Positions 15,484-55,996 of a stretch of 64,000 nt of DNA are shown here, piece after piece. The position numbers and the translations under genes are program-made. The first letter of the stretch is position 1; every line of letters starts with the position of its first letter. The stretch covers positions 352,030-416,029 of the IMG/VR virus record IMGVR_UViG_3300027896_005002. One strand, 5' to 3'. The notes below the pieces were generated by a model that made no database searches, had not been told where the DNA came from, and was given only the letters and a program-made list of their open reading frames with translations.

Positions 15484-16267
15484 GAAATGTCCTTTCAACT
15501 ATTTTATTTCTAATTTTTCTTGTTATAATCAATGTCTTAATAATTTTAGATAATTTTTTTCCTTTTTTTGATTCACCAATTTTTCTTTTTGTTTCTTCAG
15601 ATAATTTTTTTCCTTTTCTTGACTCACTAATTTTTTTCCTAGCTTCTTCAGACATTTTTTTACCTTTTTTTGATTCACTAATTTTTCTTCTAGTTTCATC
15701 AGAACATGGTCTATTATAAAAATTAGGATTGTTTTTTCTTGTTTCATTCATTTTTCTTTTCACTTCATCTGAAAGATGTTTACCAAATAAATAATGATTT
15801 TCACCTTTATTTGATTCACTTATTTTCTTTCTAGTCTTTTTTGAATGATGCTTGCCAAACATTGGATGATTTTTACCTGACTTTATTTCACTTAATTTCT
15901 TTTTATGCTCTTCAGTAAATTTCCTACCCTTTGATGCTATACTTAATTTTTTTCTAGTTTCTTCTGATATTATTTTACCCTTACCACCTTCATTTAAGTT
16001 ATAACCTTTTTGTGGATTCATAGTATTATGCATTTTTATAAAATACTGTTCAGCTTTATCTAAAGTAGAGTTGTCTAAAGTATTACATTTTATACTCCAC
16101 TCAAATTTATCAAACCCATACTTTCTAAGAGCTCTATGAAAATAAAGATCATCATTTTTCATAGCATCTTTAAAATGTTGAATCCTTCGTTTTTCTAAAG
16201 TTCTAGTAGTCTGACCAAAATAAAGTTTTCCGTTTATTTTATTTTTAACTTGATAAATTATAGACAT
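15476..16267 (-). mobile_element. Free-standing GIY-YIG homing endonuclease with NUMOD3 repeats
   Basis: IIYQVKNKINGKLYFGQT..LEKRRIQH, E..FI, GYNLNEGG and repeated SEETRKKISES motifs; Lys-rich composition unlike its neighbours. Confidence 0.9.
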
Positions 16268-41390: not shown

Positions 41391-44162
41391 TTAGAGTTTT
41401 GCTCTAATATTAAATGTCACTCTAATATATGATAATTCAAATACTGGCTTATAGAAAGCTTCAGCTACTAAATAGTTAGGATCAGTGTCTGACGGTGTAG
41501 CTGTAACATTTGTATAATCAGAAATAATTTCAGCTTCCTTAAGAGCTGATAATGTTGCAGCGAGAGTAGAAGCAACATTACTTGCAGTATTGGGTAAGAA
41601 TTTCTTACCAATATACTGATCAAGACTAGATCTAGCCTGAATTTGAACCTCATCCATAATTGTAACAATGTTCGGTGCTTTATTAAATGGGTTACTCATA
41701 TCAGTTGTTAAAGCATGACGAACTTTCAAAATTCCACTATCAGAAACAATTACTGTTATACCAGCAGAAGCAGTTTCATCCATTTCAATCTCATCCATAT
41801 CTCGAACTAACCGTTTGAATCCAGTAATTGTCTTTCTTGTCATAGGTTCTGCAACATCATATGCTGTAGTTACATTCAATCCTACAAGAGCGGCAGCAAT
41901 GTAACTACCATCAACAATATATTCAGATTCAACTCCTCGTTCATCAGTTAATCCAATTACAGCACCATCAGGATAAACTGCAACAATACGAGAATAACCT
42001 AAAGCTTTTGCATAAACTGCAGCATCTTGAGATTCGGTTCCTACAGCAAATCCAATAAAAGCAGTTCTTTCTGATCTTCGTCTTTCAGATGACATTGTAG
42101 CTAAGTTAGTCTTAAGTGCAGATATTACTGTAGCAGAAGTAGTAACAACATGAATTACTCGAGGTTTAATTCCATTAATCGGCTTTTCTGTCTCAGCTAA
42201 AGCTTCAATAAATGCTTCATCTGATGCTACATCCTGACCAGGTTCCTTTAAAACTTGTTTACACATAACAGCAACAGCACCATTAACCATCATTAAAAAT
42301 GCTGATAATGTAATTTGATTACTAATGTCCAAAGCACCATATTCATTAGTAATATCTTTAAATAGTGTAAATACTTTAGGCGTAAAATCTGTCTTTTGAT
42401 AATAATATGTGATGTAATATGTAGAACCTACTGAAGGTTCACGTCCACTTCTATCAAAAGTCTGAATATTTGTTACATCACCAACACCAGTGTTCAAAGT
42501 ATCAGAAACAATCAACCTTAATCCATACATAACATATTCTGGTCCTTGACAACTAGTTATTACAGCTGACGTTCCGGTCTTGAATGGACCTGCAATACCA
42601 GTACCAGGACCACCAGATCTTGTGCCAGGAATGTCATCATTATGACAATGAATTGTAATTGTGTCACCTGGTGAATATGTTCCATCTGGTGTAATAGTAA
42701 ATTGTAATCCTGTACGAGCATCAATATATGTACTTCCTGTTTTACCGGCACCATTAGATCCTAAAATATTAGTAGATGTAACAGCAAAAACAGTCGAACT
42801 TGAAAATTGAATTGTTACAACTTCGTCAACTGCTTTAGTTTTACTAGCTTTTAGATGCGCACCAGAAGCGTCCATAAAAGTCGGTGTAGGTGTAGTTGAA
42901 TATCCTGTAACCTTAGCATTAAATAATGAACCATTAGCTGAAGTACTAATCTTATATGTTCCAGTTCCTGCAGCACCTGCAATAACAACTTGTATTGCAT
43001 AAGATTCATCCATTAGCTGACTTCTCCAGTATGACACTTCAACTAAAGATCCACCACCAGGAATATTCTTCAAATATACTTTTCCTGTTTCACCATCAAC
43101 TCTTGTAACTGCAACTTGTGTACCATTTACATATACAGCTGCTTTTGTTGGGTCATCAGTAATAACATTGCGACCATTACCGTCAACAATTGGTAAATAT
43201 TTGACTGTTAAAACATTTTCAACACCGGTAAATTGTGACGAAACATCTTCTTTAATAATTCGATCATCAACTAACATTGTTGCAATCTGGTCTTCAAAAT
43301 AAATGGATCCAGAAGTATGCGTCATTACAGTTTCTAACACTCCAGCACCCCATTGTATCTTATTGCCATCAAGAACAACAAAATCAACACCTTCAACATA
43401 GTTTGCTAAATCTGGAGAATCACCAACTGAAACAACACTCGTTAATCCACTTTGCGGCAATAAATCAAAAGTATCAGCATATTGATTAAAGTAGTAAGTC
43501 AATGTTACTGTATCAGTTATTAATGGTGCAACAGCAAATGTTACAACACCATCAATACCATTAACATCAGAAACTGTAACAACTAAACCATTAACTTTTG
43601 CAACAACATCAGTAATAGTTGTTGTTGGAACACCACTACCTCGACCATCAACAATTGGTTTATGTGATGTATAAAATATTCTATTAGTTCCATTAGCTTG
43701 TGTCGATTCATCTTCATTATTGATCTTTGTATCAGTCAATTTGAAATAATAAGTAATTGCAACAAAATCAGTAGCTTTTGGAGGTAATTGAAGAGTTACA
43801 AGACCATTAAGACCATCAACTCTAACAACAGGTACTGGATTATTATTAACACTTGCAATTACATCAGATACTCTATTTGTTATGGTCCCAGTACCATCAC
43901 CAGTTACTATGGGATAATAAGTAACTTGAAATACCGTATTTAAACCATCAGCTTGTCCAGAAACATCTTCATTAGAATACTTGTTGTCGATATAAGCAGA
44001 TGATCCACGAACAACATCCTGATTCAACAACAATTTCTGTTCTTGACCTGTGCCAATAACAATAGGAATTCTTAATCCGCCAAGTAAACTTGCAACGTTC
44101 GGATCTAACAAAGTCCTATCATACACACCAGGCGCCAAATAACCGGAAACAAATGCTGCCAT
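41391..44162 (-). CDS. Contractile tail sheath protein with inserted surface modules
   Basis: N-terminal YLAPGVYDRT and C-terminal IVTIMDEV...YIGKK...ISDY..V.....AFYKPVFELSYIRVTFNI are classic sheath termini. Confidence 0.95.
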   Translation of the reverse strand: MAAFVSGYLAPGVYDRTLLDPNVASLLGGLRIPIVIGTGQEQKLLLNQDVVRGSSAYIDNKYSNEDVSGQADGLNTVFQVTYYPIVTGDGTGTITNRVSDVIASVNNNPVPVVRVDGLNGLVTLQLPPKATDFVAITYYFKLTDTKINNEDESTQANGTNRIFYTSHKPIVDGRGSGVPTTTITDVVAKVNGLVVTVSDVNGIDGVVTFAVAPLITDTVTLTYYFNQYADTFDLLPQSGLTSVVSVGDSPDLANYVEGVDFVVLDGNKIQWGAGVLETVMTHTSGSIYFEDQIATMLVDDRIIKEDVSSQFTGVENVLTVKYLPIVDGNGRNVITDDPTKAAVYVNGTQVAVTRVDGETGKVYLKNIPGGGSLVEVSYWRSQLMDESYAIQVVIAGAAGTGTYKISTSANGSLFNAKVTGYSTTPTPTFMDASGAHLKASKTKAVDEVVTIQFSSSTVFAVTSTNILGSNGAGKTGSTYIDARTGLQFTITPDGTYSPGDTITIHCHNDDIPGTRSGGPGTGIAGPFKTGTSAVITSCQGPEYVMYGLRLIVSDTLNTGVGDVTNIQTFDRSGREPSVGSTYYITYYYQKTDFTPKVFTLFKDITNEYGALDISNQITLSAFLMMVNGAVAVMCKQVLKEPGQDVASDEAFIEALAETEKPINGIKPRVIHVVTTSATVISALKTNLATMSSERRRSERTAFIGFAVGTESQDAAVYAKALGYSRIVAVYPDGAVIGLTDERGVESEYIVDGSYIAAALVGLNVTTAYDVAEPMTRKTITGFKRLVRDMDEIEMDETASAGITVIVSDSGILKVRHALTTDMSNPFNKAPNIVTIMDEVQIQARSSLDQYIGKKFLPNTASNVASTLAATLSALKEAEIISDYTNVTATPSDTDPNYLVAEAFYKPVFELSYIRVTFNIRAKL

Positions 44163-44248
44163 AGTAATTTCCTTTCACAAAATATATACAATAACTTTTG
44201 TTTTACAGCAATGAATTTAATTTTAATGAATTTTAATTTAATTAATCT

Positions 44249-44263
44249 TAATTACATTCACAA
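44249..44263. repeat. 15-bp inverted-repeat arm (partner at 40272-40286)
   Basis: taattacattcacaa in the sheath upstream intergenic region. Confidence 0.8.
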
Positions 44264-44275
44264 CAATAAGGCAGG

Positions 44276-44300
44276 ATTATAAATCATACAGTAAATGGTC
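44276..44300 (-). promoter_or_regulatory. Candidate promoter for the sheath-tube cassette
   Basis: Two TATAAT hexamers, one within TTTATATAAT, in a 165-bp AT-rich gap. No convincing -35 or BRE, and such motifs arise easily at this AT content. Confidence 0.3.
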
Positions 44301-44327
44301 ATTATATAAAACAAATATTAAATCAAA

Positions 44328-45467
44328 TTAAGAAATATTTGTCGCTTGCCAAGTTGTTTCTACGCCAACATTATTAAAAACTTTTTCAATATTTATTTTC
44401 TTTAAAACGAATCTCCACTGTGGCGATGTTGGAAATAAAGCTCCTGTTATATACACATTAATTCTCATATTAAACGGAGAACTTGTGTATTGTTCAACAG
44501 TATATCTGGCAATGTTAGTTCCATCATTATACGGCAATGGTATAAAACAATCACTGGTCGTATGAGTTGTATTCCTTTGTACCATTGCTGCAACTACTAC
44601 AAAACTATCCCATGTTAAACTAACATCTAAATCAAACCACGCACCACTATTTAACGACGCATTTAAATAAACATATTCTCCAGTATTAATCATTATCCCA
44701 TTATATAAAACATTGCCATAAGAATCAATTGAAAAATTACCTATCTGTGGAATAACTTGTCTAAAATCAACTATGTCAGCTGCAAGAATATTTGGATTAC
44801 CACTATGTCTGTGAATTTCAGCAAGTTTGTAATAACGATGATAAACACTATTAGCATCTAAACCATCTACTGGAATTGATGTTGTTCCTTCAGCCACTAA
44901 CACATCTTGAACAATTCTAAATCTATTAGCAGACTGTACATTCAAAGTTGCATCTTTTATAGTAGTATCATGATATTCGCTACCGGCTTCTGAACTAACT
45001 TCTGCCAGATAAGTATCAACATATACTGTATCTATACGGTCAGATCCTGGCACGCTAATTGTGGGTATGACTGTTGTAGTATAATTATCATCTTCTAATG
45101 TTCCCGATGTTCCTTGTTGATTATATTCTATACTACCAAATAACAATAATGGATAACCTTTAACTATTAACATTGCAGGTTGATCTGCTGATCCACCAGT
45201 TACTGTAAAATTACTAACAGTTGTAACTACGCTTTGTGATACTGACCAAGAATTTATACCAATAGCACCATCACCAATATTTGATTCAAGAAATCTTCTT
45301 ATAAAATCAAAACTTCTATAAGAAATTTCTGACAATTCATAATCTAATACTGCCTTACCTGTTTGTTCTGCAAACAAATACCTTCTTTTTGCTTTACTTT
45401 CTAATTTTGATATTGGTAGAGGAATATAAGAATATATTCCAATATATGAACCAGCAGGATTACTCAT
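44328..45467 (-). CDS. Hypothetical virion structural protein
   Basis: 379-aa beta-rich ORF with a good SD, upstream of the sheath. Confidence 0.55.
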   Translation of the reverse strand: MSNPAGSYIGIYSYIPLPISKLESKAKRRYLFAEQTGKAVLDYELSEISYRSFDFIRRFLESNIGDGAIGINSWSVSQSVVTTVSNFTVTGGSADQPAMLIVKGYPLLLFGSIEYNQQGTSGTLEDDNYTTTVIPTISVPGSDRIDTVYVDTYLAEVSSEAGSEYHDTTIKDATLNVQSANRFRIVQDVLVAEGTTSIPVDGLDANSVYHRYYKLAEIHRHSGNPNILAADIVDFRQVIPQIGNFSIDSYGNVLYNGIMINTGEYVYLNASLNSGAWFDLDVSLTWDSFVVVAAMVQRNTTHTTSDCFIPLPYNDGTNIARYTVEQYTSSPFNMRINVYITGALFPTSPQWRFVLKKINIEKVFNNVGVETTWQATNIS

Positions 45468-45480
45468 TATTTATCTCCCT

Positions 45481-45642
45481 TTATTGTTCTCGTTGTTTCA
45501 ATGGATCTAAATACTTTGGAAAATTTAATGATTTTCCAAGCGTATTATCTACATCAGAATATAAATTAGGATTGTCAATCGTCCTCGGTGTAGGCTCTAA
45601 CATTTCTTTTACAATTTCATCAATCATTTCTTCATCATCCAT
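45481..45642 (-). CDS. 53-aa acidic hypothetical protein
   Basis: Not in the ORF track. My translation is MDDEEMIDEIVKEMLEPTPRTIDNPNLYSDVDNTLGKSLNFPKYLDPLKQREQ*, which fills the gap between genes. Confidence 0.55.
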   Translation of the reverse strand: MDDEEMIDEIVKEMLEPTPRTIDNPNLYSDVDNTLGKSLNFPKYLDPLKQREQ

Positions 45643-45653
45643 TGTACACTCTC

Positions 45654-46883
45654 TTATAACACCATTGTTTTTGAATTAATTAAAGAATACCTTGGAACGG
45701 GTCTTACAAGCATCGGTGTCAAATCATCAACAGGCTGTAGACCTACTTTATAATCAACACCGACTTGTGTAGAATCAAATGATCTTGCAGCTCTAACACC
45801 AAATTCAGCATCATCATATCGACCCGTGTCTTCAACTCTACTCAAAAATACTTGTTTAATTACACCTAATATTGGTTGATACGCTTCCCATTCAACATTA
45901 ATATCAAATGATAAATCTGCTAAAAAAGCTAACTCATTTGATGTTTTTACTTCATCTTCTTCAGTCTCGCCTGATATATTAACATTCTCAATGTATATTC
46001 CATCATTTACTAATTTATCTTGTAACACTGACCACAAATACATTGCTGTTAGATCTGTTAATTGTTCTTCAGTATCAGTGTCTTGTGCTGTTATAGATAA
46101 ATTTACCGTTAATTTCCATTTGCCCAAATAAGATCTTGCGACTTCCTGTCTTGATGGATACACTACTACAACTTGTAATCCACCCTTTTGCAAAAAATTA
46201 CCAAATGCCAAAATTACACCAGGAATTGCAGTATTATTATAAGTTTCTGATTCAACTTCAATTACCTGTGATTTTTCACCAATATACTGATAATCTGCAG
46301 TAATTTGTCCATAATCCTCTATCGGTTTTAAAAAGATAATTCTACCATTAACATAATCTATTGTATAATGTAAATCTCGTAACAATCTTTGAGCAGTTTC
46401 AGATATTAGATATTCACTTCCTGGATTTATGTTCTTATATTTTAAATCTGCATATGTTACAGGAGTCACTTGATATTCAAGTATTCCAACTTGAATATCT
46501 AATACCTCATCTGCAACAGTTAAATATGGTTGAACTGTAAACTTTTCATTATCAACCATTTCAACAACATAAAATCCCGGCTTTACAAGATTTTCAACAT
46601 TTCGAATATCTTCTCTAACCCATTCAATCATACGTCCAGGTCTATTTTTCAAATTTGCTAATGTCGTATAAGATGTTATAATCCCTTTAAAATTATCAGC
46701 ACCCAATTTAACATATTGCGCACTTGCAGTTTTAACAACAATAGAAAATTTTGGTCTTTCTGGCAATTGAAATTTGTTTGTTATAACAAGACTGCCATTA
46801 CCAAACACTGGATGGTCTACAAATAAAGCTTGCAACTCCTGTATTATAATTTTTTTTACAACGTTCGTGATTCGAAAGAACAT
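45654..46883 (-). CDS. Tail terminator/completion-like protein
   Basis: IIIQELQALF...ERPKFSIVVK and GKWKLTVNLSITAQD...EQLTD pattern of gpU/gp15-type terminators; upstream of the sheath. Confidence 0.5.
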   Translation of the reverse strand: MFFRITNVVKKIIIQELQALFVDHPVFGNGSLVITNKFQLPERPKFSIVVKTASAQYVKLGADNFKGIITSYTTLANLKNRPGRMIEWVREDIRNVENLVKPGFYVVEMVDNEKFTVQPYLTVADEVLDIQVGILEYQVTPVTYADLKYKNINPGSEYLISETAQRLLRDLHYTIDYVNGRIIFLKPIEDYGQITADYQYIGEKSQVIEVESETYNNTAIPGVILAFGNFLQKGGLQVVVVYPSRQEVARSYLGKWKLTVNLSITAQDTDTEEQLTDLTAMYLWSVLQDKLVNDGIYIENVNISGETEEDEVKTSNELAFLADLSFDINVEWEAYQPILGVIKQVFLSRVEDTGRYDDAEFGVRAARSFDSTQVGVDYKVGLQPVDDLTPMLVRPVPRYSLINSKTMVL

Positions 46884-46938
46884 ACTCTGTCACCTTGTTT
46901 GATCAATGCTATTAGGATTAATTGTTTTCATATACTCA

Positions 46939-47214
46939 TTAAAATGATTTATGAAATCTTGTAAATCTATCTACAGGAAATTCACCTTCAATATCATCAC
47001 CTATTTTATCTTCTTCAGGTGAATAATTAGCAATAGAAATCTTTCCAGGTGTAGCAATCTTTGTTACTTTATAAATAGATCCCTTATTGAGACCTTGTAC
47101 CTGATCAACTAATGTCACAGGATCACCAACTTTAAATACTTTTGCAACTTTGTCAGTAATTCCTGCTTCTTTCATTAATCGATCAATAACCCTAGATTCA
47201 AGTTCATTATCCAT
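46939..47214 (-). CDS. Small protein with an SH3/KOW-like domain
   Basis: Likely start is the ATG at 47214 (SD AGGAG); FKVGDPVTL..GSIYKVTKI motif. Confidence 0.5.
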   Translation of the reverse strand: MDNELESRVIDRLMKEAGITDKVAKVFKVGDPVTLVDQVQGLNKGSIYKVTKIATPGKISIANYSPEEDKIGDDIEGEFPVDRFTRFHKSF

Positions 47215-47227
47215 ATTTTCTCCTTTT

Positions 47228-48274
47228 TTATTCTTCTTCATATTCGGATATAGCACTATATAGACATCCTCTAGCTACTGCAAACATGGGATCCTGTGCC
47301 ATTCTAATATCTTTAATATTAAATGGAAATTTAATTTTTTCAATTTCTTTTTTGAAAACAACATCAAAAGATTTTATAAGTGATGTTCCACCAGCTAAAA
47401 CAATTGAAATAGGTTCTGGAAATTCGGGAACATCTTCAGCTTGTGACAATTTCTTTTCAAAACATTTAATAACATAATTTATAAGATTTATATAAAAAAT
47501 GCGTATAGATTCTTCATGTCGACCTTTTGGAGCTAATAAATCAATGCCTGCTTCTTTAATTGCAGTTATTTTTGATGTTCTTTCACCAATTGCCATGGCA
47601 GCACTATTATCAATCCAATCACCTGATCTTGATACTGAAAATTCAATTGATGCTGTCCCTAAATAACTCAAACATGCATTACACATACCGGCACCAAAGC
47701 TAATTGCTAATCCAGTAAAATTTTCCTCATCAAGTTCAGAATAACAAATAGCTCTTGCTTCATTAATGGGCTGTGCATCAAAGCCAAAAGATTCAATAAA
47801 TGATTTTAAAACATTCTCGTGATAAATAATATTATAATCGGCATCAATTGGATTTGCAGGAATTGAAAATTTACAAACTTCTTTATCACAAATAGGTTCA
47901 CCCAAAACATTTTTAATAATTGTTTTTATCATTAATAATGCTTCAGGTTCTCTTGTACTAATGACACCTTTTTGTAAAGGTCTGCGAACTTCTCTCTTAA
48001 ATATATTTGCAAAATTAAGAGCTTCTTGACCGATTACATATAATGATTTAGCATCATCAGATTCAATATAATGTGCTTTATTTAATGTCAACATATTACG
48101 AGAAAGTTTATCATTTTCAATATCAAAAAAAGCATCTCGTTGTGTTCTAATCTTTACTTCATCATCTTCTTGCATTATGGCACTATTAATAAATGCTGTG
48201 CCGATGTCTGCACCTATACCTTTTTGACGTTTAACTGGGATGTCCGTCTTTTCTTGTTTTTCATCAGTTGACAT
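47228..48274 (-). CDS. Actin-superfamily ATPase (volactin/MamK/MreB-like)
   Basis: All five actin-fold motifs in order: GADIGT (phosphate 1), PINEARA (connect 1), ISFGAG (phosphate 2), LAGGTS (adenosine), DPMFAVARG (connect 2). Start at the ATG at 48274 (SD AAGGAAGG). Confidence 0.9.
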   Translation of the reverse strand: MSTDEKQEKTDIPVKRQKGIGADIGTAFINSAIMQEDDEVKIRTQRDAFFDIENDKLSRNMLTLNKAHYIESDDAKSLYVIGQEALNFANIFKREVRRPLQKGVISTREPEALLMIKTIIKNVLGEPICDKEVCKFSIPANPIDADYNIIYHENVLKSFIESFGFDAQPINEARAICYSELDEENFTGLAISFGAGMCNACLSYLGTASIEFSVSRSGDWIDNSAAMAIGERTSKITAIKEAGIDLLAPKGRHEESIRIFYINLINYVIKCFEKKLSQAEDVPEFPEPISIVLAGGTSLIKSFDVVFKKEIEKIKFPFNIKDIRMAQDPMFAVARGCLYSAISEYEEE

Positions 48275-48326
48275 CTTGACCTTCCTTTTTAATTGTTTAA
48301 TTTTCATTTGTTTCATAAAATCTCCT

Positions 48327-48974
48327 TTAATTTTTATTAATCTGCTTTATCTTCTTAGCAACTGATTTAGCTTTAATATCTTTTTGCTGTGTTACATCAC
48401 CAATATCACCATTGATATTTGTTTTTAATTCTTTACCATCATCAATATTAACAAAAACATTACCAACAGATTTATCTATTTCATTATTAACTTTCTGTGG
48501 TTGTACTGTCGGTAATTTATCTACAATCTTATTTACAATTTCATCAACATCAACATTTTTTGATGATTCCTTTTTTAATTCCTGTAATATTGCAGCTGTT
48601 GATTGACCCAACATTTCGCGAAATAATTCTTTTATTTCATCTTTATTTATACTAGGTTTCTGTTCTTGATAAACTACAGGTTCATTAATAACTGGTTTTT
48701 CAGATGAATATGACATCTTCTGAACATATTGTTTACCTTCAATAACATCAATCCAATCTTTTGAATAAGCTGCTAATAAATCAGCAGATCGTCTAACTTC
48801 ATCAACAGAAATATCTAATATTTGATTATATTGAACAATTTTATTAATATCTCTTATTATTACCTGACCAACAACTCTACCAATAATTCTAACATTCTCA
48901 GGCCTCAAAGTCTTCATATGCTCATACCACATTTGCTCAGTTAAAGAATATCTATCATTTAAAATGATATTCAT
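48327..48974 (-). CDS. Hypothetical protein, possible actin adaptor
   Basis: 215 aa directly upstream of the actin gene: globular N-terminus, low-complexity linker and a basic C-terminal helix. Confidence 0.5.
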   Translation of the reverse strand: MNIILNDRYSLTEQMWYEHMKTLRPENVRIIGRVVGQVIIRDINKIVQYNQILDISVDEVRRSADLLAAYSKDWIDVIEGKQYVQKMSYSSEKPVINEPVVYQEQKPSINKDEIKELFREMLGQSTAAILQELKKESSKNVDVDEIVNKIVDKLPTVQPQKVNNEIDKSVGNVFVNIDDGKELKTNINGDIGDVTQQKDIKAKSVAKKIKQINKN

Positions 48975-49423
48975 GTTAAACCTTCATCAATTGCAATATC
49001 CATACAGGCATCTCTAATTTTATTGACAGATATATCAAAAAAACCTTTGCCACGTTTAAATCCTGGATGAACCCACTTTCCAGATTTATTTATATTTCGT
49101 CTATTGGCAACACGAAAAATTGTTTGTCCCCTACTAGTTGTAATTGGTATCGGACCTGCATCAACTAAATATCTCATTTTATGACGTTTAACACCATCAT
49201 TCAATATACCGGCGTAATCTGCTCCAATTTCAAATTTTACACCATCTCGTTTAATTGTTGCACCAACATTATCAATCAAATTTCTAGTATTTATTAAATG
49301 TCGTTTAGTAATCTCATGTTTAAAAATCTTTACACCTTTTCTTGCAACTTTCTCAATAATTTGACGTCGTTTTGAATCTAAAGCTCTATCATTAACAACT
49401 ATTGTTTTAAGTTGCAATTTCAT
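48971..49423 (-). CDS. HK97 gp10-like / neck-associated protein
   Basis: Basic protein with A.YAGILNDG and WVHPGFKRGKGFF motifs. Confidence 0.55.
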   Translation of the reverse strand: MKLQLKTIVVNDRALDSKRRQIIEKVARKGVKIFKHEITKRHLINTRNLIDNVGATIKRDGVKFEIGADYAGILNDGVKRHKMRYLVDAGPIPITTSRGQTIFRVANRRNINKSGKWVHPGFKRGKGFFDISVNKIRDACMDIAIDEGLT

Positions 49424-49425
49424 AA

Positions 49426-49878
49426 TTATACAACATCAGGATCTATTGAAGGATCCGGCATAATTGGTGCATGCGGTATAATAAATGGTTCAGCTGTCGT
49501 AAATGGAAATGATACTAAATTATACCTTGATTGTTGATCCCATTCATATTCAGAAATTGTTGCTCGATCACTATTTTTTTTATTATAAACATTCATCGCT
49601 GTTTGATCAAATATAGCTTGCGGCATCTCACTTGACTGCTTACCGACTAAAGACCGTTGTTCCTTAAATAATTCAGGCTCAACATAATTTTTATTACGTT
49701 CAACAGGATCACTTATATTAACAGTTGCAATTTCTGTTGAAATATCGTCATCATTAAACTTTTGTTTTATTGTTGCAGTATTTGGTCCTAATGGCAAATT
49801 TGCAACATCATTTAAAGATCCACCCAAATTTCTTTTGCCTAAAATATTTGCCGGAGCTATAATTACATCATTTGACAT
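49426..49878 (-). CDS. Hypothetical protein
   Basis: 150-aa ORF tightly packed in the operon. Confidence 0.55.
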   Translation of the reverse strand: MSNDVIIAPANILGKRNLGGSLNDVANLPLGPNTATIKQKFNDDDISTEIATVNISDPVERNKNYVEPELFKEQRSLVGKQSSEMPQAIFDQTAMNVYNKKNSDRATISEYEWDQQSRYNLVSFPFTTAEPFIIPHAPIMPDPSIDPDVV

Positions 49879-49886
49879 AATTAATC

Positions 49887-50327
49887 CTATGACACTGTTA
49901 TTACTATATGATTACTTTCAAACCCACCACCAATTTTTGCATAAATTTCTGCTGTACCTGTCGCAACAGCTGTCACTAATCCTTCAGAAACTGTTGCATG
50001 ACTAGCATTAGTTGTAAACCATGTTGCAACACCAGTAACATCTTTACCTTGAGCATCTGGTGTAATTGACGGTGAATATTGTTTCTCTCTAAACAATAAT
50101 GCTAATAACTGAATTGTATTACCAACAACCATTGTTTGAGAAAGACCACAATAAATTACAAGATTTCTTGGATTATTAAGAAATCCGTCTTTCATTAAAG
50201 TTCTAGCATTTGCAAGTGAAAACGGCGTTAATTGAGAAAAAGTATCTACATCAGAATTTGTTACTACAGATTCATTATACTCTCTTAACGCAGTACGAGA
50301 TTGACCTAATTCAATAAAATCGCTCAT
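49887..50327 (-). CDS. Virion protein with a C-terminal Big_2 Ig-like domain
   Basis: ATWFTTNASHATVSEGLVTAVATGTAEIYAK is a Big_2 signature. Confidence 0.75.
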   Translation of the reverse strand: MSDFIELGQSRTALREYNESVVTNSDVDTFSQLTPFSLANARTLMKDGFLNNPRNLVIYCGLSQTMVVGNTIQLLALLFREKQYSPSITPDAQGKDVTGVATWFTTNASHATVSEGLVTAVATGTAEIYAKIGGGFESNHIVITVS

Positions 50328-50441
50328 ATATCACTCCTTTACCAGTAGAAAATTTATCAAAATTTAATTACTTCTTCATTTGTCATCCAATTACGATAAT
50401 AAAAAATTGGACAATTTATTTTATCAGTTACTTCAATCATA

Positions 50442-52469
50442 CTAAAACATGGAATTTTCAAAATTTATAGTTCTGCCCTTAGGATCATCAAAATCAGGTC
50501 CTTTATCAGTTCTTATCTTATCAGCTTCTTGAAGCTCTCCATCTTTTATAACATTGTCATCTGTATAATGAGCATGTGGATTTCTTAATCCAACAAAATT
50601 TCTATAATTAAGTAAATCTAACTTCATTGATGTCACAAACTCATATCTTATATCTGTCATGTCGACACTTTCAACTGAAAAATGTTGTTGTGTCGGAATA
50701 CCTTTTATATCCGGTGTTGAAATAGGACCTATAGCATATATTTGTCCTCGTCTACGAACAATAAAATCTCTTTGCGTAATCGTTGGCGAAATTGTTGTCC
50801 ATGTTTCTTCTATATTTTCAAGTTTCATACCTCGTTCAGTCCACATTATCTTTTGATCAGACTTAAATGGCGATATTCTTATTTCATAAGGTCCTTCATA
50901 ACCACCAATAAAAGCAGTTCCCCAACATTTTTTACAAGGACCAACTTTTGCTTGTTTATGTGTGCGTTCATCTTTCAAATAACATTCACATTTCCTGCCT
51001 GTTGTCTTTTTAATAAATAATAATACTCTTTCTCCGGCTTGATCTAATAACCATGAATTTCTTCTTATTGCCTCTAAATACATATAATCTAATCGTTCAC
51101 CGTTTGCTGTCACAGGTTCACATATATTAAGTCTAGTCTCACTACCATCACTTAAAATAGTTGTAACTTTATAATGAGGTAATGCTGACAAATTCATTCT
51201 AAATAAATTGACCATATACTTATAAGTAATTGTTACAACAGATGTCGGTAATGGAACAACAGGTTCAACCCATTTATTTAAAACATTATCAAATACTCGT
51301 TCAGTTTCAAGTTTAACAATGCCCGCTAGACCATCAACAGATTTTATTGTAGCTAATCTATTATCAACAAGAACTTGAACCGATGCCGGTTTATCAGAAT
51401 ATGGATCTAGATTTGTAGTTGTATTTGTTTTATTGGTAACTATAGGAACATTTCTAACTTGGATATTATAATCACCTCTAACATCTTTTATTAATGGCAA
51501 AAATGTTAATCCATCATTTATATGAAAATAATCAAATTGTACTTCTAATGGTTTATCTGAACTTTTAGCATAAAAACTTACTTGTAAATCAATACCAGAA
51601 AATCCTAAATAAGATCTCATTAACACCCAACTACTACCATCAAAATAAGATGTTGATACATCAGTTCCTGTTCGACTTATTCTAAATTTACCTTTAAAAT
51701 CAACTGTTACAATCTCAGTTCTATCAATTATTTGTGAACTAACCATTAATGTACTAACATAATAATCAAATGCAGCAGTGCGATATCTAGATATTTTTAC
51801 AAACGAATAATCATCAATAGATACAATAAACCCGACCTCAGAATTAGATAAAACATCAGTCACAGGCCAATTAAATATTTCAAATTGTGTCTCAATATCA
51901 AATTGATCTCTCATATAAAATTTTGATCTAAAATATGCTTGTCTATTGTTTCCAAATACATCAACAAAATGAAGAGCACCAGATTGATTTATTAATCTAT
52001 CAGGATCTAATGCTTGCCATCTGCTATCATTCACAATTTGACCAGGAAAATCGGTAGCAGCATCGTCAACTTTCATTTTAAATTTAAATTGTTCTGATAC
52101 ATCTTCTTGTACAACCAAGACATTCAATGCAGAGTCTCTATAAAATGTCGTCGTTACTGGAACGTCATTTACTTTAATAAAGGTTTTGTCTTTTACAGAA
52201 TAAACATGATCTGCAGTTATCGAATCATGTGAAACAATATTCTGTAAATATTGAGCATCAACTTGTGATCGATAAATATTATAGCCAATAATATCAGAAT
52301 TCATAGGCATCATATCATCCCAACAAATATCTAATGTGTTTTTAATATAAGGAAAACTTACCGTCGCATTAGTTGGAACAATATTATTTTCTTTTGGCAC
52401 AATTGTTATTGGCGGTACAACATGACTATGTTCATGTTCAATGCAATTTTCATCATCAAAATCGCTCAT
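50442..52469 (-). CDS. Head-closure/neck-like protein with FN3 and ConA-like beta-sandwich additions
   Basis: C-terminal EAIRRNSWLLDQAGERV..KCEC...CKKCWGT..IGGY Cys-cluster domain of myovirus neck proteins; N-terminal W....IIGYNIYRS. Confidence 0.5.
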   Translation of the reverse strand: MSDFDDENCIEHEHSHVVPPITIVPKENNIVPTNATVSFPYIKNTLDICWDDMMPMNSDIIGYNIYRSQVDAQYLQNIVSHDSITADHVYSVKDKTFIKVNDVPVTTTFYRDSALNVLVVQEDVSEQFKFKMKVDDAATDFPGQIVNDSRWQALDPDRLINQSGALHFVDVFGNNRQAYFRSKFYMRDQFDIETQFEIFNWPVTDVLSNSEVGFIVSIDDYSFVKISRYRTAAFDYYVSTLMVSSQIIDRTEIVTVDFKGKFRISRTGTDVSTSYFDGSSWVLMRSYLGFSGIDLQVSFYAKSSDKPLEVQFDYFHINDGLTFLPLIKDVRGDYNIQVRNVPIVTNKTNTTTNLDPYSDKPASVQVLVDNRLATIKSVDGLAGIVKLETERVFDNVLNKWVEPVVPLPTSVVTITYKYMVNLFRMNLSALPHYKVTTILSDGSETRLNICEPVTANGERLDYMYLEAIRRNSWLLDQAGERVLLFIKKTTGRKCECYLKDERTHKQAKVGPCKKCWGTAFIGGYEGPYEIRISPFKSDQKIMWTERGMKLENIEETWTTISPTITQRDFIVRRRGQIYAIGPISTPDIKGIPTQQHFSVESVDMTDIRYEFVTSMKLDLLNYRNFVGLRNPHAHYTDDNVIKDGELQEADKIRTDKGPDFDDPKGRTINFENSMF

Positions 52470-52473
52470 AATT

Positions 52474-52959
52474 TTATTCTTTCAAAAAGTTTTCAATGAT
52501 TGGAAATAATTCATCTGCTGTATTAAAAGCATTAACATTTTGTTTTGTGTTAGTCCAAACATCAAATTGATTAACTCTCAAAAATGATTTTGATTTCAAA
52601 ATATTTTTATTATATGAATATCCAAAAATATTTGGATCAGACAATCCAAAAATAGCTATTCCTGGAGTTACCAAGCTCATACAATTGCACATATGAGGTA
52701 AAAAATTATCAACACTTATCCAAGAATAACAATCAGATAACTTTTGTTGCAACTTTTCAAATGATAACCCGTACATTACGTCATCTACATTTTGTAAAAC
52801 TTGTTCACCAAATGTACCAATCTGAATTAATTTGTAATTTAATGTTTTAAGTAATGGTATTAGTTGTATCCAATATGGATACGACTTTGGATGTGTAGGT
52901 GTAAAACTATAAGGACTAATAATAATAAAATCACCAACCTTTTTAGTTCTAATATTCAT
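52474..52959 (-). CDS. GT9 (heptosyltransferase-like) C-terminal Rossmann half
   Basis: IIISPY...KSYPYW..LI, WISVDNFLPHM and GIAIFG.SDP..FGY motifs. Confidence 0.7.
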   Translation of the reverse strand: MNIRTKKVGDFIIISPYSFTPTHPKSYPYWIQLIPLLKTLNYKLIQIGTFGEQVLQNVDDVMYGLSFEKLQQKLSDCYSWISVDNFLPHMCNCMSLVTPGIAIFGLSDPNIFGYSYNKNILKSKSFLRVNQFDVWTNTKQNVNAFNTADELFPIIENFLKE

Positions 52960-53537
52960 TTATTTTTCCATAATTTTTTATGTGATTTACTTATTTTTCT
53001 TTTAGTTTCTTCAGAATGATGAAATTTACCTTTTAAAGCTTTACTTAATTTCTCTTTTGTTTCTTTAGAAAGATGTCTACCTAACATCGGTGGTTTTTGA
53101 TTTTTTCTAGCTTCTCTTATTTTTGTTTTTGTTTCTTCTAAAAGATGTTTACCTTTCCAAAAACCTTTTCGTCCAAACATTCCATTTTTTTTACCTCTAT
53201 TAGCTTCACCGATTTTTCTTTTTCTTTCATCAGAACATGGTAATCCGCATGAACCATCACCGCCTTCAGTATCATTAGTTAATGGCCATTTTAATTTTCT
53301 ACCAAAAGCTATCCAATTTTTTTCTCTTTCCTGCCAAATATTTTCATCACATTGTTCTAAAATACAATAATTTGGTTTTAATCCTTGTTTAAGTAAAGAT
53401 TGAATCCAATAATATTTATGTGAAAGGCGCTTACTCTTAAGATGACCATTAAATCTATCATATGGATTATTTGCTTTACCAATATAACGTACTTCTAAAG
53501 TTTGAGGATCAATTAATCCATAAATAAATGTTTTCAT
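52956..53537 (-). mobile_element. Free-standing GIY-YIG homing endonuclease with NUMOD3 repeats
   Basis: FIYGLIDP...VRYIGKANNPYDRFNGH, E..WI, LTN.TEGGDG and HSEETKRKIS motifs; ATGA overlaps at both ends. Confidence 0.9.
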
Positions 53538-55267
53538 ATATTATACATTTGTTTATAAGCTTCAGCCAATGTCTTTTTCCATGCTTTATCCGTCATGAAT
53601 TTATAAACGTTGTATTGATCTATATTATTTAATAAACTTTTAGCATCTGCAATCGAAGCTTGTTTTATATTCTTTATATCATTAAAAACTTCGGGATAAG
53701 TTGTAAAAAATATGTGTGTTTTATTTTTATTTTTATTAAAATAATCATTCAAAATACTTTTAAAACAAAAATGATCTCCAATTCCATTTTCTAAAACAAC
53801 AAATGAATAATCATTTGGTCTTACATTCCACTCAAACATCTTTCGCATAAAGACTTGTTCATCTTTAAGTGCCATATTAGCAGCTTCATCATGTGATCTA
53901 TTTCCTCCTGCCGGATTACAGAAATGCCATGTTTTAGCACTTGGATCAATTAATAACTTATAACCTTTTCTCTTTATCTCATAAGTCAACATAGTTTCTT
54001 CTCTATGTCCTATAGGAGATAAATTCAAATTATAAGCTGCAATTGACTTACGATATATGAATGAGCTATATAAATGATCAACTTCTTTGATTAAATAATC
54101 AGTTTGTAAAAACCATTGATCATTTAGTCCTAGAAAAATATCTTCAATTTTATTTGATGTAATTGCTGGTGCATACTTTATTGCAGTAGAATTAATTACT
54201 AGTCCTGCAATTGCTCCAACATTATAATCAACATGTCGTATAAGTTTTTCTAATACATCATTTTCTGGTACATTATCATCATCTAGACGCCATATCCATT
54301 CAGTTTCTGCAATTTCCAATGACTTGTGATAATTTAAAACTTGACCTTTTGCTTCACCAAATATTACTTTCCAAGATATATTGTAAAAATCAAACAATGA
54401 AAAAATATGACTATATATTGGATCCGTTCTTAAGTCTTTATGTTCGTTCCAGCGTTCAGGCGGTAAAGAATCATCAAAAATAATAATGCACTTTGGTTTA
54501 TAAGTTTGATTACATACTGCAGTTAAAGTTAATGGTAAGGTTGAAAACTGACGATTTTTTGATGAAATTACACAAGTAATATCTACATTTTTTGCCTTTG
54601 TTTTTTGTATCTTTTTAAATTTATAAATCTTATTTGATCCTATACTTACTTGACCTTTGTCACCATAAACATAAAAATGATTTACTTTCATAAGTAAAAA
54701 ATTATTAAAATCAAGAAATTTTATAATCTCATCTGGCCAATGATCTTTTACTGTATGAATCTCAGCATAAATATAGTCAAGTTTATCAATAAATTCCGTT
54801 TTAAGACTCAATAAAATATCATATTCAGCACCTTCACAATCAATTTTTAAAATAAAACTTTCATCTTTATATTCTGTCATTATTGCAGATAAAGTATTTA
54901 CTTTAACAGATTCACTATTATTTTCACATTTATCAGTTGTAATAGCTAATCCACCAGTGCCAACTGTATATAATGTCTTAATTTCATTACTAATAGCTTC
55001 ATTTCTAATAATAATATTTTTAATTTTATATTTTTCAATATTTTTTGATAATTTTCCAAAATTTTTAGATTCAGGTTCTATTGCAATTATTTGCTTTGGT
55101 TTGAATTCAGATGCAAATATTGAAAACATTCCAACATTTGCACCAATATCTATTACAATTTTATTTTTTATTTCTTCTTCTTCTACACAATATGAATTTT
55201 TTACAAATACTTCATCAAAAATAAAATTATCTTCTCTTTTTAAATCAATGTACTTCTCTTCAAACAT
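53534..55267 (-). CDS. FkbM-family methyltransferase + GT2 glycosyltransferase + GT9-like N-terminal half
   Basis: VIDIGANVGMFS and LKIDCEGAEYDIL (FkbM); CVISSKNR, IIIFDDS and WIWRLDDDNVP (GT2); C-terminal VVLENGIGDHFCF (GT9 start). Confidence 0.85.
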   Translation of the reverse strand: MFEEKYIDLKREDNFIFDEVFVKNSYCVEEEEIKNKIVIDIGANVGMFSIFASEFKPKQIIAIEPESKNFGKLSKNIEKYKIKNIIIRNEAISNEIKTLYTVGTGGLAITTDKCENNSESVKVNTLSAIMTEYKDESFILKIDCEGAEYDILLSLKTEFIDKLDYIYAEIHTVKDHWPDEIIKFLDFNNFLLMKVNHFYVYGDKGQVSIGSNKIYKFKKIQKTKAKNVDITCVISSKNRQFSTLPLTLTAVCNQTYKPKCIIIFDDSLPPERWNEHKDLRTDPIYSHIFSLFDFYNISWKVIFGEAKGQVLNYHKSLEIAETEWIWRLDDDNVPENDVLEKLIRHVDYNVGAIAGLVINSTAIKYAPAITSNKIEDIFLGLNDQWFLQTDYLIKEVDHLYSSFIYRKSIAAYNLNLSPIGHREETMLTYEIKRKGYKLLIDPSAKTWHFCNPAGGNRSHDEAANMALKDEQVFMRKMFEWNVRPNDYSFVVLENGIGDHFCFKSILNDYFNKNKNKTHIFFTTYPEVFNDIKNIKQASIADAKSLLNNIDQYNVYKFMTDKAWKKTLAEAYKQMYNI

Positions 55268-55277
55268 AAACCACTCC

Positions 55278-55925
55278 TTATAGATTCCATTTATTTTGAT
55301 AATAACTTTTATCTATGCAAATATCTTTAACTGCTGATACATGATTTACTAAATGAGGTATCACTTTTATTTTATAATTATTTTTTCTCATTACATTACA
55401 ATAATCTAAATCATATAAATGAAATCCTTTTATATCTTCAGAAAATTTTAAATCAGTATTAGTTGCCATAAACATGCCATCAATATAATTTACATCATCA
55501 AAACTCTCATTAACTGTCCATAACCAAAATTCTTTCTGTTTACCACTTAATACTTGTCCCACTATATCTGATCTATTACACTCCCACCAAAAACCACGTG
55601 GATTTCCTTTAGTACCTACTAAACCAACAAGACCTGTATCTGGAAAAGAATTAAAAATAAAATCTACTCTACAAAATAATGGATTTAAATTATTATCCAT
55701 TAAATCAACATCTTCATGAATGAAAAATTTTGTTTTAAATTTACACTGTAGTATAGCTCTATTATAATTTTCACATATTGAAGTCTCTCCACAAACCTCA
55801 ACTACTTGTAAATCAGGCAATTTATTATTGTTTAAATAATCTTTAATGGGATTAAGAGATGGTAATAATACGGATTCAAAAACATCATGATTTTTTATAC
55901 TACAAATTACTGAAAACATTATCAA
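55278..55925 (-). CDS. GT2-like (GT-A) glycosyltransferase
   Basis: SICENYNRAI, FFIHEDV, DGMFMAT and GFHLYDLDYC motifs. Confidence 0.8.
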   Translation of the reverse strand: MIMFSVICSIKNHDVFESVLLPSLNPIKDYLNNNKLPDLQVVEVCGETSICENYNRAILQCKFKTKFFIHEDVDLMDNNLNPLFCRVDFIFNSFPDTGLVGLVGTKGNPRGFWWECNRSDIVGQVLSGKQKEFWLWTVNESFDDVNYIDGMFMATNTDLKFSEDIKGFHLYDLDYCNVMRKNNYKIKVIPHLVNHVSAVKDICIDKSYYQNKWNL

Positions 55926-55996
55926 GTTTCTTTTTGTTCAATTTTCTAATATCAAATATTCATATTCATATTTATTTGCATTAATTTTACTTTACT

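Follow-up and report, generated by a model that had tools for sequence, protein, structure and literature searches.

A volactin-type actin and its conserved candidate adaptor encoded between the neck and tail genes of huge phages

Phage-encoded cytoskeletons are known from only a few cases, the PhuZ and TubZ tubulins and the AlpC actin, each of which changed how infected cells are understood. PhuZ forms a spindle in nucleus-forming jumbo phages and organises infection, including the trafficking of capsids (PMC9067925). It is a GTPase of the tubulin fold, is expressed early and has no known dedicated adaptor of the kind described here. AlpC of the Corynebacterium glutamicum prophage CGP3 is an actin-like ATPase with a co-transcribed upstream adaptor, AlpA, that links DNA to the filaments; alpAC is an early gene pair that supports DNA replication, and AlpA binds a DNA site in its own promoter (PMC4446434). 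The type II plasmid segregation systems ParM/ParR/parC and AlfA/AlfB likewise combine an actin filament with an adaptor whose C-terminal tail binds the actin, as established for ParR and ParM, whereas in magnetosome positioning the MamK filament places a large non-DNA cargo through the linker protein MamJ. Volactin (VolA, HVO_2015; Pfam PF25216) of Haloferax volcanii, the one studied member of its family, forms dynamic filaments in vivo and influences cell shape (PMC10869688). No description of volactin-family actins in phages or in gas-vesicle clusters was found in the literature library searched, although automatic database labels such as ‘Volactin domain-containing protein’ already exist for viral clusters.

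The locus examined here lies in a 64,000-nucleotide stretch of DNA (the window) that is 100% identical to part of a 416,029-bp IMG/VR phage contig and carries sheath, tape measure, baseplate J and fibre genes. An initial annotation, made from the sequence alone, had proposed a complete actin-fold ATPase and an upstream candidate adaptor embedded among neck and tail-completion genes; both open reading frames are present on the minus strand as proposed, and that observation is confirmed. The features of the locus are the following.

47228–48316, minus strand: volactin-family actin-fold ATPase, 362 residues (alternative start at Met15, position 48274).
48327–48974, minus strand: 215-residue partner, a candidate adaptor and founding member of an unannotated family.
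48720–48905, minus strand: N-terminal folded domain of the partner (residues ~24–85), phage-specific, the presumed cargo-binding part.
48330–48479, minus strand: C-terminal tail of the partner (residues 166–215), VFVNIDDGKELKTNI...IG... followed by the basic helix KAKSVAKKIKQINKN, the presumed actin-binding part.
48321–48326, minus strand: Shine-Dalgarno sequence AGGAGA of the actin gene, directly after the stop codon of the partner.
48971–49423, minus strand: neck1/tail-completion-like protein (150 residues), immediately upstream of the partner.
46939–47256, minus strand: g105, a small open reading frame between the actin and g409, specific to the window’s sub-clade.
45654–46883, minus strand: g409, a conserved probable virion protein that follows the actin in about 70 viral loci.
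41391–44162, minus strand: tail sheath (923 residues).
50442–52469, minus strand: g675, a conserved structural-module protein upstream of the neck genes.

The 362-residue protein matches the Pfam Volactin model PF25216 over profile positions 3–321 of 321, at E=7.8e-81 and 272.5 bits against a cut-off of 35, whereas MreB_Mbl (PF06723) gives only 28.5 bits, confined to residues 303–352 at the C terminus. There was no Pfam match to ParM, HSP70 or a kinase, PHROGs contains no family for the protein, and a sequence search of the PDB gave no meaningful hit, so that there is no solved volactin structure for comparison. The three motifs on which the initial annotation based its assignment to the volactin family rather than to MreB or ParM, EALNFANIFKREVRRP, PINEARAICYSELDEENFTGLAISFGAGMCNA and FSVSRSGDWID, are present in the translation. 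Representatives of all four clades of the family pass the same model, with haloarchaeal members at 436–466 bits, the gas-vesicle type at 313, the Planctomycetota type at 279 and other phage members at about 250. The nucleotide-binding motifs DxGT, SFGAG, GDWID and GGTS are invariant across viral and cellular homologues (D23/G25/T26, E172, S192/G194/G196, G218/D219 and G295–T297). The phosphate-2 motif begins with Ser instead of the Asp usual in actins, which may alter ATPase kinetics.

The AlphaFold2 model of the actin (pLDDT 90.8, pTM 0.87) shows a complete actin (ASKHA) fold with the phosphate-1, phosphate-2 and adenosine motifs and, in a Foldseek search, is closest to filament-forming proteins. 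The top 23 hits are MreB, MamK or BeeR, with TM scores of 0.60–0.66 for MreB, where the similarity is at fold level, and 0.67/0.72 for the MamK filament (5ljv), which belongs to a different sequence family; actin is also matched, and ParM ranks only 48th. Grouping with Hsp70 or sugar kinases, which the initial annotation had named in advance as an outcome that would count against it, was not observed. EutJ, an actin-fold protein from a microcompartment operon, is nevertheless among the matches, and together with the position among head–tail joining genes and the unusual Ser of the phosphate-2 motif it keeps open a non-filamentous role, in which the ATPase would act like EutJ, FtsA or the Hsp70 nucleotide-binding domain as an ATP-driven factor in building the neck or tail, with the partner as a co-chaperone. 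We consider this unlikely: the best fold matches are polymerising actins, the protein is the size of a nucleotide-binding domain only and lacks an Hsp70 substrate-binding domain, the one studied family member forms dynamic filaments in vivo, and the architecture of the partner, described below, is typical of filament adaptors rather than of co-chaperones.

The actin and its partner are translationally packed into the late neck/tail operon. The start codon of the partner overlaps the upstream neck-like gene by 4 nt, and the actin follows 10 nt after the partner on the same strand. No terminators were found across positions 44000–52600, and promoter-like sites were at chance level; an internal promoter or terminator that would separate the pair from the structural genes was rejected on this ground. 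The upstream neighbour matches phrog_5 (E=6.9e-6) and, weakly, HK97-gp10, and the sheath, three genes downstream of the actin, matches phrog_2839 (E=4e-26) and Phage_sheath_1C. The g409 protein gives repeated weak DUF2460 hits, which are also seen in the N-terminal region of the sheath. The late morphogenesis context proposed by the initial annotation, as opposed to a replication module, is thus supported.

The order g675–neck–partner–actin–g409–sheath holds in about 70 of 80 viral loci, with g675 homologues at 30–60% identity and homologues of the neck-like protein upstream of the actin in most of them. Neighbouring genes are 26–45% identical where the actin is 40–45% identical, and the pair diverges in step with the structural genes. 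In an independent set of loci anchored on g409, 68 of 75 have the actin just upstream. Seven related phage loci lack both genes near g409, showing that the module is not indispensable. An actin is here a near-core, vertically inherited gene of the virion-morphogenesis module across hundreds of uncultivated huge-phage contigs.

In the phylogenetic tree the viral actins lie on one side of a branch with SH-aLRT support of 95, and the haloarchaeal sequences group with the gas-vesicle-type bacterial clade (97). A first tree had split the viral sequences into two groups with weak support (55), a split that disappeared once three long-branch rows (loci L043, L150 and L081) were left out. The phage protein is a member of the Pfam family but forms a clade separate from the haloarchaeal volactins, to which its identity is about 40%, and orthology with the haloarchaeal cell-shape volactin clade is not supported (haloarchaeal megaplasmid homologues were used in place of HVO_2015). 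Cellular homologues are common in Planctomycetota, Omnitrophota and other phyla, which makes a host-mimicking origin conceivable, and, given the effect of volactin on Haloferax cell shape, the phage actin might remodel host shape or division, or interfere with the host cytoskeleton, to enlarge or stabilise the cell for production of very large virions. This possibility, also raised by the initial annotation, appears improbable, as the viral actins form their own long-standing clade rather than nesting in a host group, the partner carries a phage-specific N-terminal domain, and the pair holds a fixed slot in the structural operon and diverges in parallel with its genes.

The 215-residue partner belongs to no Pfam or PHROG family. 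An iterative profile search among 12,102 open reading frames found one homologue per locus beside the actin, always on the actin’s strand, in 77 of 84 viral and 78 of 80 cellular (bacterial) loci. Synteny of the pair, the other point that the initial annotation had set as a criterion, therefore holds. Homologues are absent wherever the actin is absent (0 of 7 loci, against 66 of 73), so that the two genes are lost together. Pfam searches with ten partner homologues gave only sub-threshold coiled-coil noise, and a profile search of a 5.8-billion-protein database with the partner alignment returned 30 unnamed proteins and no annotation.

The AlphaFold2 model of the partner consists of a folded N-terminal domain (pLDDT 85–97 for residues ~11–85), a disordered linker and a terminal helix (residues 201–214). 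The N-terminal domain is conserved among phage partners, including distant ones (identity 0.51 in close relatives, against 0.29 for the linker), but is exchanged between lineages. It has no recognisable fold or binding partner: a search of the PDB found nothing at E<0.1, BFVD gave only short, weak matches to small uncharacterised phage proteins, and the ESM Atlas gave only viral hypothetical clusters scoring below 0.8. The tail, in contrast, is shared by viral and cellular partners and always lies at the extreme C terminus; cross-group profiles built without iteration hit only partner reading frames. It comprises an acidic stretch, then L-x-T/S-N-I, then a basic helix. The initial annotation had described the C terminus as a basic amphipathic helix like those of ParR/AlfB-type adaptors. 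The last 15 residues do carry a net charge of +6, but amphipathicity is only weakly above shuffled controls and not significant (muH 0.45 against 0.29 ± 0.14, p about 0.13). A conserved tail, variable linker and lineage-specific N-terminal domain constitute adaptor architecture, and the reading of the partner as an adaptor is supported, although its binding to the actin, with which the conservation of the tail is consistent, is inferred.

Such an adaptor could instead bind phage DNA, with the filament placing the genome or concatemer, for example for packaging or for segregation of a plasmid-like prophage, as in AlpAC or ParMRC. Several hints point in this direction in parts of the family. In viral clade 1 a ferritin/Dps-like protein (PHROG annotation ‘DNA binding protein’) lies between partner and actin in 38 loci, HU–volactin fusions exist in Acidobacteriota, and partners in gas-vesicle clusters have a winged-helix-like N-terminal domain (weak MarR_2 match, E=0.009). 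The window’s own clade, however, lacks the Dps-like gene, and no DNA-binding domain, RHH and HTH included, was detected in the phage-type partner by Pfam, PHROGs or fold searches, which cannot exclude an unrecognised DNA-binding fold. Between positions 46800 and 50500 only two-copy imperfect repeats inside coding sequence were found, with no iterons or centromere-like array, and the overlapping genes leave no intergenic space upstream of the partner. The pair also sits in the late neck/tail operon, in contrast to the early alpAC. A DNA cargo remains a live alternative, but a less likely one.

Bacterial relatives of the pair lie inside gas-vesicle gene clusters or on Planctomycetota chromosomes. 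They are not mis-binned copies of this phage type, as none carries sheath, g409 or g675 homologues and several lie on contigs of 1–6.6 Mb. Gas vesicles are another large protein-shelled cargo and in this respect offer an analogy to virions, although the same clusters, in which the pair is next to a Cdc48-like AAA ATPase and a J-domain-fused GvpF/L, would also suit the assembly-factor reading. In haloarchaea the volactin gene is preceded by that of a DUF7139 membrane protein rather than a soluble adaptor; its similarity to the partner tail (HMM E=5e-4 in one of three, hhalign probability 21%) is too weak to claim a link.

The locus is best explained as a two-gene cytoskeletal module of a huge tailed phage, a reading to which we assign a probability of roughly 0.5. 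The analysis itself establishes a volactin-family actin-fold ATPase with intact nucleotide-binding motifs, a conserved and co-inherited upstream partner, the translational packing of both genes into the late neck/tail operon, and their occupation of the same slot in a large clade of huge phages. It is by inference that the actin would polymerise into dynamic filaments, as Haloferax volactin does in vivo, that the C-terminal tail of the partner would dock on it as the ParR tail docks on ParM, and that the N-terminal domain would bind a phage cargo. In this view, because the pair is expressed with head–tail joining genes and diverges in step with them, the cargo is most likely a large virion sub-assembly, such as filled heads, tails or whole particles, which the filament would gather or position late in infection. 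The interpretation given in the initial annotation, a filament that positions or transports virions, or an actin counterpart of PhuZ, is thus partly supported: family, adaptor and late context hold, whereas the function is an inference.

The module would be an actin analogue of PhuZ-type trafficking and of MamK/MamJ positioning. The fold is actin-like, not tubulin-like, and the resemblance to PhuZ, which belongs to a different phage lineage, is functional only; relative to MamK/MamJ, no membrane organelle is involved and the partner is unrelated to MamJ. The pair shares the arrangement of an actin-like ATPase with an adjacent, co-oriented adaptor gene with the type II systems, but the actin is not of the ParM family and belongs to a different actin family from AlpC. 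What differs from volactin is its encoding in a phage neck/tail operon, instead of a cellular cell-shape locus, and its pairing with a soluble candidate adaptor of a previously undescribed family. Actin-based organisation of virion assembly would then be a lineage-defining trait of these phages. A broader reading, which we regard as doubtful, is that a large clade of huge phages runs its own actin cytoskeleton, in which a volactin-type filament coupled through a dedicated adaptor to virion sub-assemblies organises head–tail joining or particle stacking late in infection, and that the same logic of a conserved actin-binding tail joined to a swappable cargo domain defines a cargo-positioning system spanning the domains of life, serving gas vesicles in many bacterial phyla, an unknown cargo in Planctomycetota and, through the DUF7139 protein, the membrane anchoring of volactin filament tips in haloarchaea. 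The gas-vesicle and haloarchaeal contexts offer tractable cellular systems in which the same proposed adaptor mechanism could be tested.

The N termini of actin homologues (MxMKQPKK...) and the Shine-Dalgarno sequence support the start at 48316 and hence the long form of the protein, whereas one database copy starts at Met15 and is 348 residues long. Homologues of g105, which has a weak phrog_4317 match, occur at 44–52% identity in loci L001–L009 only. One close relative is binned in a Nitrosarchaeum MAG, but that contig carries the same phage structural genes.

Both ORFs exist exactly as set out in the initial annotation, on the minus strand, at 47228–48316 (362 aa) and 48327–48974 (215 aa), and the sequence motifs quoted there are present in the translation; the observation is confirmed. 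The genes are tightly packed. The start codon of the 215-residue partner overlaps the stop codon of the upstream 150-residue gene by 4 nt, and the partner's own stop codon is followed at once by an AGGAGA Shine–Dalgarno sequence and the ATG of the actin. Between 44000 and 52600 there are no terminator-like sites above chance, and promoter-like sites occur at the shuffled rate. The pair is therefore part of one long co-oriented operon.

The 362-residue protein is placed by Pfam in the Volactin family (PF25216) at E=7.8e-81, with 272.5 bits against a cut-off of 35, covering profile positions 3–321 of 321, whereas MreB_Mbl matches only the last 50 residues, at 28.5 bits. An AF2 model built from 18 homologs is confident (pLDDT 90.8, pTM 0.87). 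Its closest solved folds are polymerising actins, namely MreB, the MamK filament (TM 0.67/0.72) and the BeeR filament, followed by FtsA, EutJ, eukaryotic actin, crenactin and ParM, with no Hsp70 or sugar kinase near the top of the list. The phosphate-1 (DxGT), connect (E172), phosphate-2 (SFGAG), GDWID and adenosine (GGTS) positions are invariant across viral and cellular homologs. No solved structure shares detectable sequence similarity with the protein. The founding member of the family forms dynamic, ParM-like filaments in Haloferax (PMC10869688). The EutJ match would also be compatible with a non-filamentous assembly chaperone, although the dominance of filament formers among the fold matches and the in vivo behaviour of volactin speak against this reading.

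The window is 100% identical to part of IMGVR_UViG_3300027896_005002, a 416,029-bp viral contig, and all of its long ORFs are on one strand. In order along that strand they are a collagen-like fibre and an RCC1-repeat protein; three glycosyltransferases; a GIY-YIG homing endonuclease; g675, a conserved structural-module protein, followed by an Ig-like protein; a neck1/tail-completion-like protein; the partner and the actin; the small ORF g105 and g409, a conserved probable virion protein; the tail sheath and a probable tube protein; the tape measure; hub- or lysin-like proteins; baseplate J; and very large Ig- and PKD-domain proteins. The description of the pair as embedded among neck and tail genes is correct. 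Features with coordinates are as follows.

58959–63803, collagen-like fibre of 1,614 aa
57641–58858, RCC1-repeat protein
53534–57640, minus strand, three glycosyltransferase genes (GT2 fused to an FkbM methyltransferase, a GT2-like gene and a GT8/GT9 gene)
52956–53537 and 15476–16267, minus strand, two GIY-YIG/NUMOD3 homing endonucleases inserted in the structural module
48327–48974, minus strand, 215-aa partner
48720–48905, minus strand, N-terminal domain of the partner
47228–48316, minus strand, 362-aa volactin-family protein
45654–46883, minus strand, g409
41391–44162, minus strand, tail sheath
599–5032, 5060–11443 and 19170–22979, minus strand, giant tail or baseplate-associated proteins of 1,269–2,127 aa carrying PKD, Fn3-associated and HYDIN/ASH-type Ig-like domains

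The location of the glycosyltransferase genes inside the virion module, next to the RCC1-repeat protein and the collagen-like fibre, suggests glycosylated virion proteins. The g409 homologs and the N-terminal part of the sheath both give repeated weak hits to DUF2460, which suggests a shared decorative β-sandwich domain.

More than 1,000 homologs of the actin exist in a collection of 5.8 billion proteins, all carrying PF25216, and many of them sit on contigs of 100–470 kb; IMG/VR holds at least 177 viral contigs with such a gene. In tblastn searches of 84 viral loci with the neighbouring proteins of the window, the order g675, neck, (partner), actin, g409 and, further along, sheath was found to hold in about 70 loci. 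The neighbours are 26–45% identical where the actin is 40–45% identical, and the actin has therefore diverged in step with the structural genes. As an independent check, IMG/VR was searched with an alignment of g409, which found 338 contigs; of the 75 loci examined that had enough upstream sequence, 68 (91%) have the actin just upstream. One published huge-phage genome, LR745208.1 (485 kb), shows the same arrangement, including the partner, whereas another, LR756511.1 (595 kb), has the actin only. Neither record is annotated, and the paper describing such genomes does not mention actin. A 58.7-kb contig binned as a Nitrosarchaeum MAG (GCA_030650065.1, JAUSEY010000114.1) carries the same neck, partner, actin, g409 and sheath arrangement, with the actin 74% identical; it is a phage contig, either mis-binned or a hint about the host.

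The 215-residue partner has no Pfam or PHROG family. An iterative profile search seeded with it was run against all 12,102 ORFs of at least 50 aa, on both strands, from 164 loci, and converged on 156 hits, essentially one per locus. Hits are present in 77 of 84 viral and 78 of 80 bacterial loci, and every hit is on the strand of the actin; 105 are immediately upstream of the actin, 39 viral hits are one gene further upstream, and a few Omnitrophota hits are about 3 kb downstream. The matches always run to the last residue. The shared region is a C-terminal tail of about 45 residues, made up of a hydrophobic or acidic stretch, then L-(E/K)-(S/T)-N-(I/L), then ...IG..., then a basic helix ending in LKKLKKGG-like residues; in the window it reads VFVNIDDGKELKTNINGDIGDVTQQKDIKAKSVAKKIKQINKN. 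Because iteration can drift, two non-iterated profiles were also built. The first, made from the last 55 residues of ORFs chosen only by their position upstream of bacterial actins, hit only partner ORFs among 7,554 viral ORFs, in 5 loci, and the second, made from the viral tails, hit only partner ORFs among 4,548 bacterial ORFs, in 14 loci. Neither profile produced a false positive, although sensitivity was low, as expected for a short motif.

The N-terminal parts of the partners differ by lineage: a phage-specific domain of about 70 residues, conserved even among distant phages; a winged-helix-like domain in the partners from gas-vesicle clusters (weak MarR_2 match); and a long coiled coil in Planctomycetota. 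The AF2 model of the window protein has a confident N-domain (pLDDT 85–97 for residues ~11–85), helices at residues 111–153, a disordered stretch at 160–199 and a terminal helix at 201–214. Among close relatives the N-domain and the tail are about 50% identical, and the linker 29%. Over about 57 residues (r.m.s.d. about 2.2 Å), the N-domain of the window protein resembles a set of small uncharacterised phage proteins, which include Bacillus phage G Gp158 and a DUF2635 protein (BFVD E from 5e-4 to 5e-2). In the seven g409-anchored loci that lack the actin, the partner is also absent (0/7, against 66/73 elsewhere). Together these results describe a modular adaptor, inferred from sequence and inheritance, that is functionally tied to the actin. 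Manipulation of host cell shape by the phage actin is possible, but it does not explain the phage-specific adaptor or the fixed slot in the operon.

Outside phages, at least 540 bacterial genome contigs encode a relative, mostly from Planctomycetota and Omnitrophota; some of these contigs are 1–6.6 Mb, and none carries the phage structural genes. A tree of 141 sequences, with three long-branch rows left out, gives four groups: all 62 viral sequences on one side of a branch (SH-aLRT 95), a Planctomycetota/Omnitrophota group (53 sequences), a mixed-phylum group (23 sequences) and three haloarchaeal volactins, sister to the mixed-phylum group (97). In the mixed-phylum group, which includes Omnitrophota, Chloroflexota, Nitrospirota, Elusimicrobiota, Saganbacteria, Scalindua and others, the actin and its partner sit inside true gas-vesicle gene clusters (locus L110:1627–10241, also loci L133, L114, L139, L131 and others) containing a Cdc48-like AAA, four GvpF/L genes, GvpG, GvpO, GvpK and GvpA/J, and 18 of 23 loci carry GvpF/L genes within 6 kb. 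One locus reads Cdc48-like AAA, GvpF/L, GvpF/L, partner, actin, GvpF/L, GvpG, GvpO, GvpF/L, GvpK, GvpA/J. The AAA and J-domain neighbours in these clusters are a further argument for the assembly-chaperone reading.

The analysis establishes family membership, an intact ATPase fold in the predicted structure, the operon position, a near-core status that appears vertically inherited within a huge-phage clade, and a co-inherited partner with adaptor architecture; that the actin polymerises, that the tail of the partner binds it and that the N-domain of the partner binds a phage cargo are inferences. Three things favour a large virion sub-assembly as the cargo: the pair sits in a late, head–tail-joining gene block, it evolves in step with the structural genes, and in bacteria the same pair sits in the gene cluster of another large protein-shelled particle, the gas vesicle. 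In this view the filament would gather or position heads, tails or whole particles, comparable to PhuZ-dependent capsid trafficking and to MamK/MamJ. The probability of this composite explanation is put at about 0.5, and the statement that the pair is an actin with a cognate adaptor is, taken alone, much firmer than the identity of the cargo. Of the interpretation in the initial annotation, the volactin-family membership, the adaptor role of the 215-residue protein and the late morphogenesis context are supported, whereas a filament that positions or transports assembling virions or reshapes the host is an inference.

A DNA cargo, as in AlpAC or ParMRC, is the alternative suggested by the precedent of prophage CGP3 and by several features of the family. 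In viral clade 1, the larger viral clade, a ferritin/Dps-like protein (PF00210, E about 5e-8; phrog_3636, ‘DNA binding protein’) is inserted between the partner and the actin in 38 loci (for example, L067:9362–9982 and L075:9312–9956), although it is absent from the sub-clade of the window. Clusters of the ESM Atlas include an HU (PF00216)–Volactin fusion of about 456 aa in Acidobacteriota (69 members), and the partners in gas-vesicle clusters have the winged-helix-like N-domains. Against this reading stand the lack of a detectable DNA-binding domain in the phage partner, the absence of iterons or centromere-like repeats near the pair and the late structural context. The same atlas also contains a viral Volactin of about 710 aa interrupted by a LAGLIDADG/intein (57 members).

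Actin-plus-adaptor systems and phage cytoskeletons are both already known, and automatic cluster names already label viral ‘Volactin domain-containing proteins’. What appears to be new is a volactin-family actin as a near-core gene of a huge-phage morphogenesis module, the adaptor family itself and the link to gas-vesicle clusters, none of which was described in any paper found in the library searched.

The haloarchaeal megaplasmid volactins score 436–466 bits on PF25216 and are about 40% identical to the phage protein. Each is preceded by a DUF7139 four-helix membrane protein (loci L247:4791–5690, L248:5049–5972 and L249:4917–5825), the cytoplasmic part of which contains a segment (VELSWGGVE...KRLN...GLKGLKGGE) that resembles the partner tail only weakly (HMM E=5e-4 in one of three; hhalign probability 21%), and which could be the membrane anchor of volactin filament tips. 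In Halogeometricum the volactin gene lies within 6 kb of rdfA and an SMC-related gene. In 18 Planctomycetota loci (L099:338–838 and 17 others), a single-strand DNA-binding protein gene lies about 2 kb upstream of the partner–actin pair.
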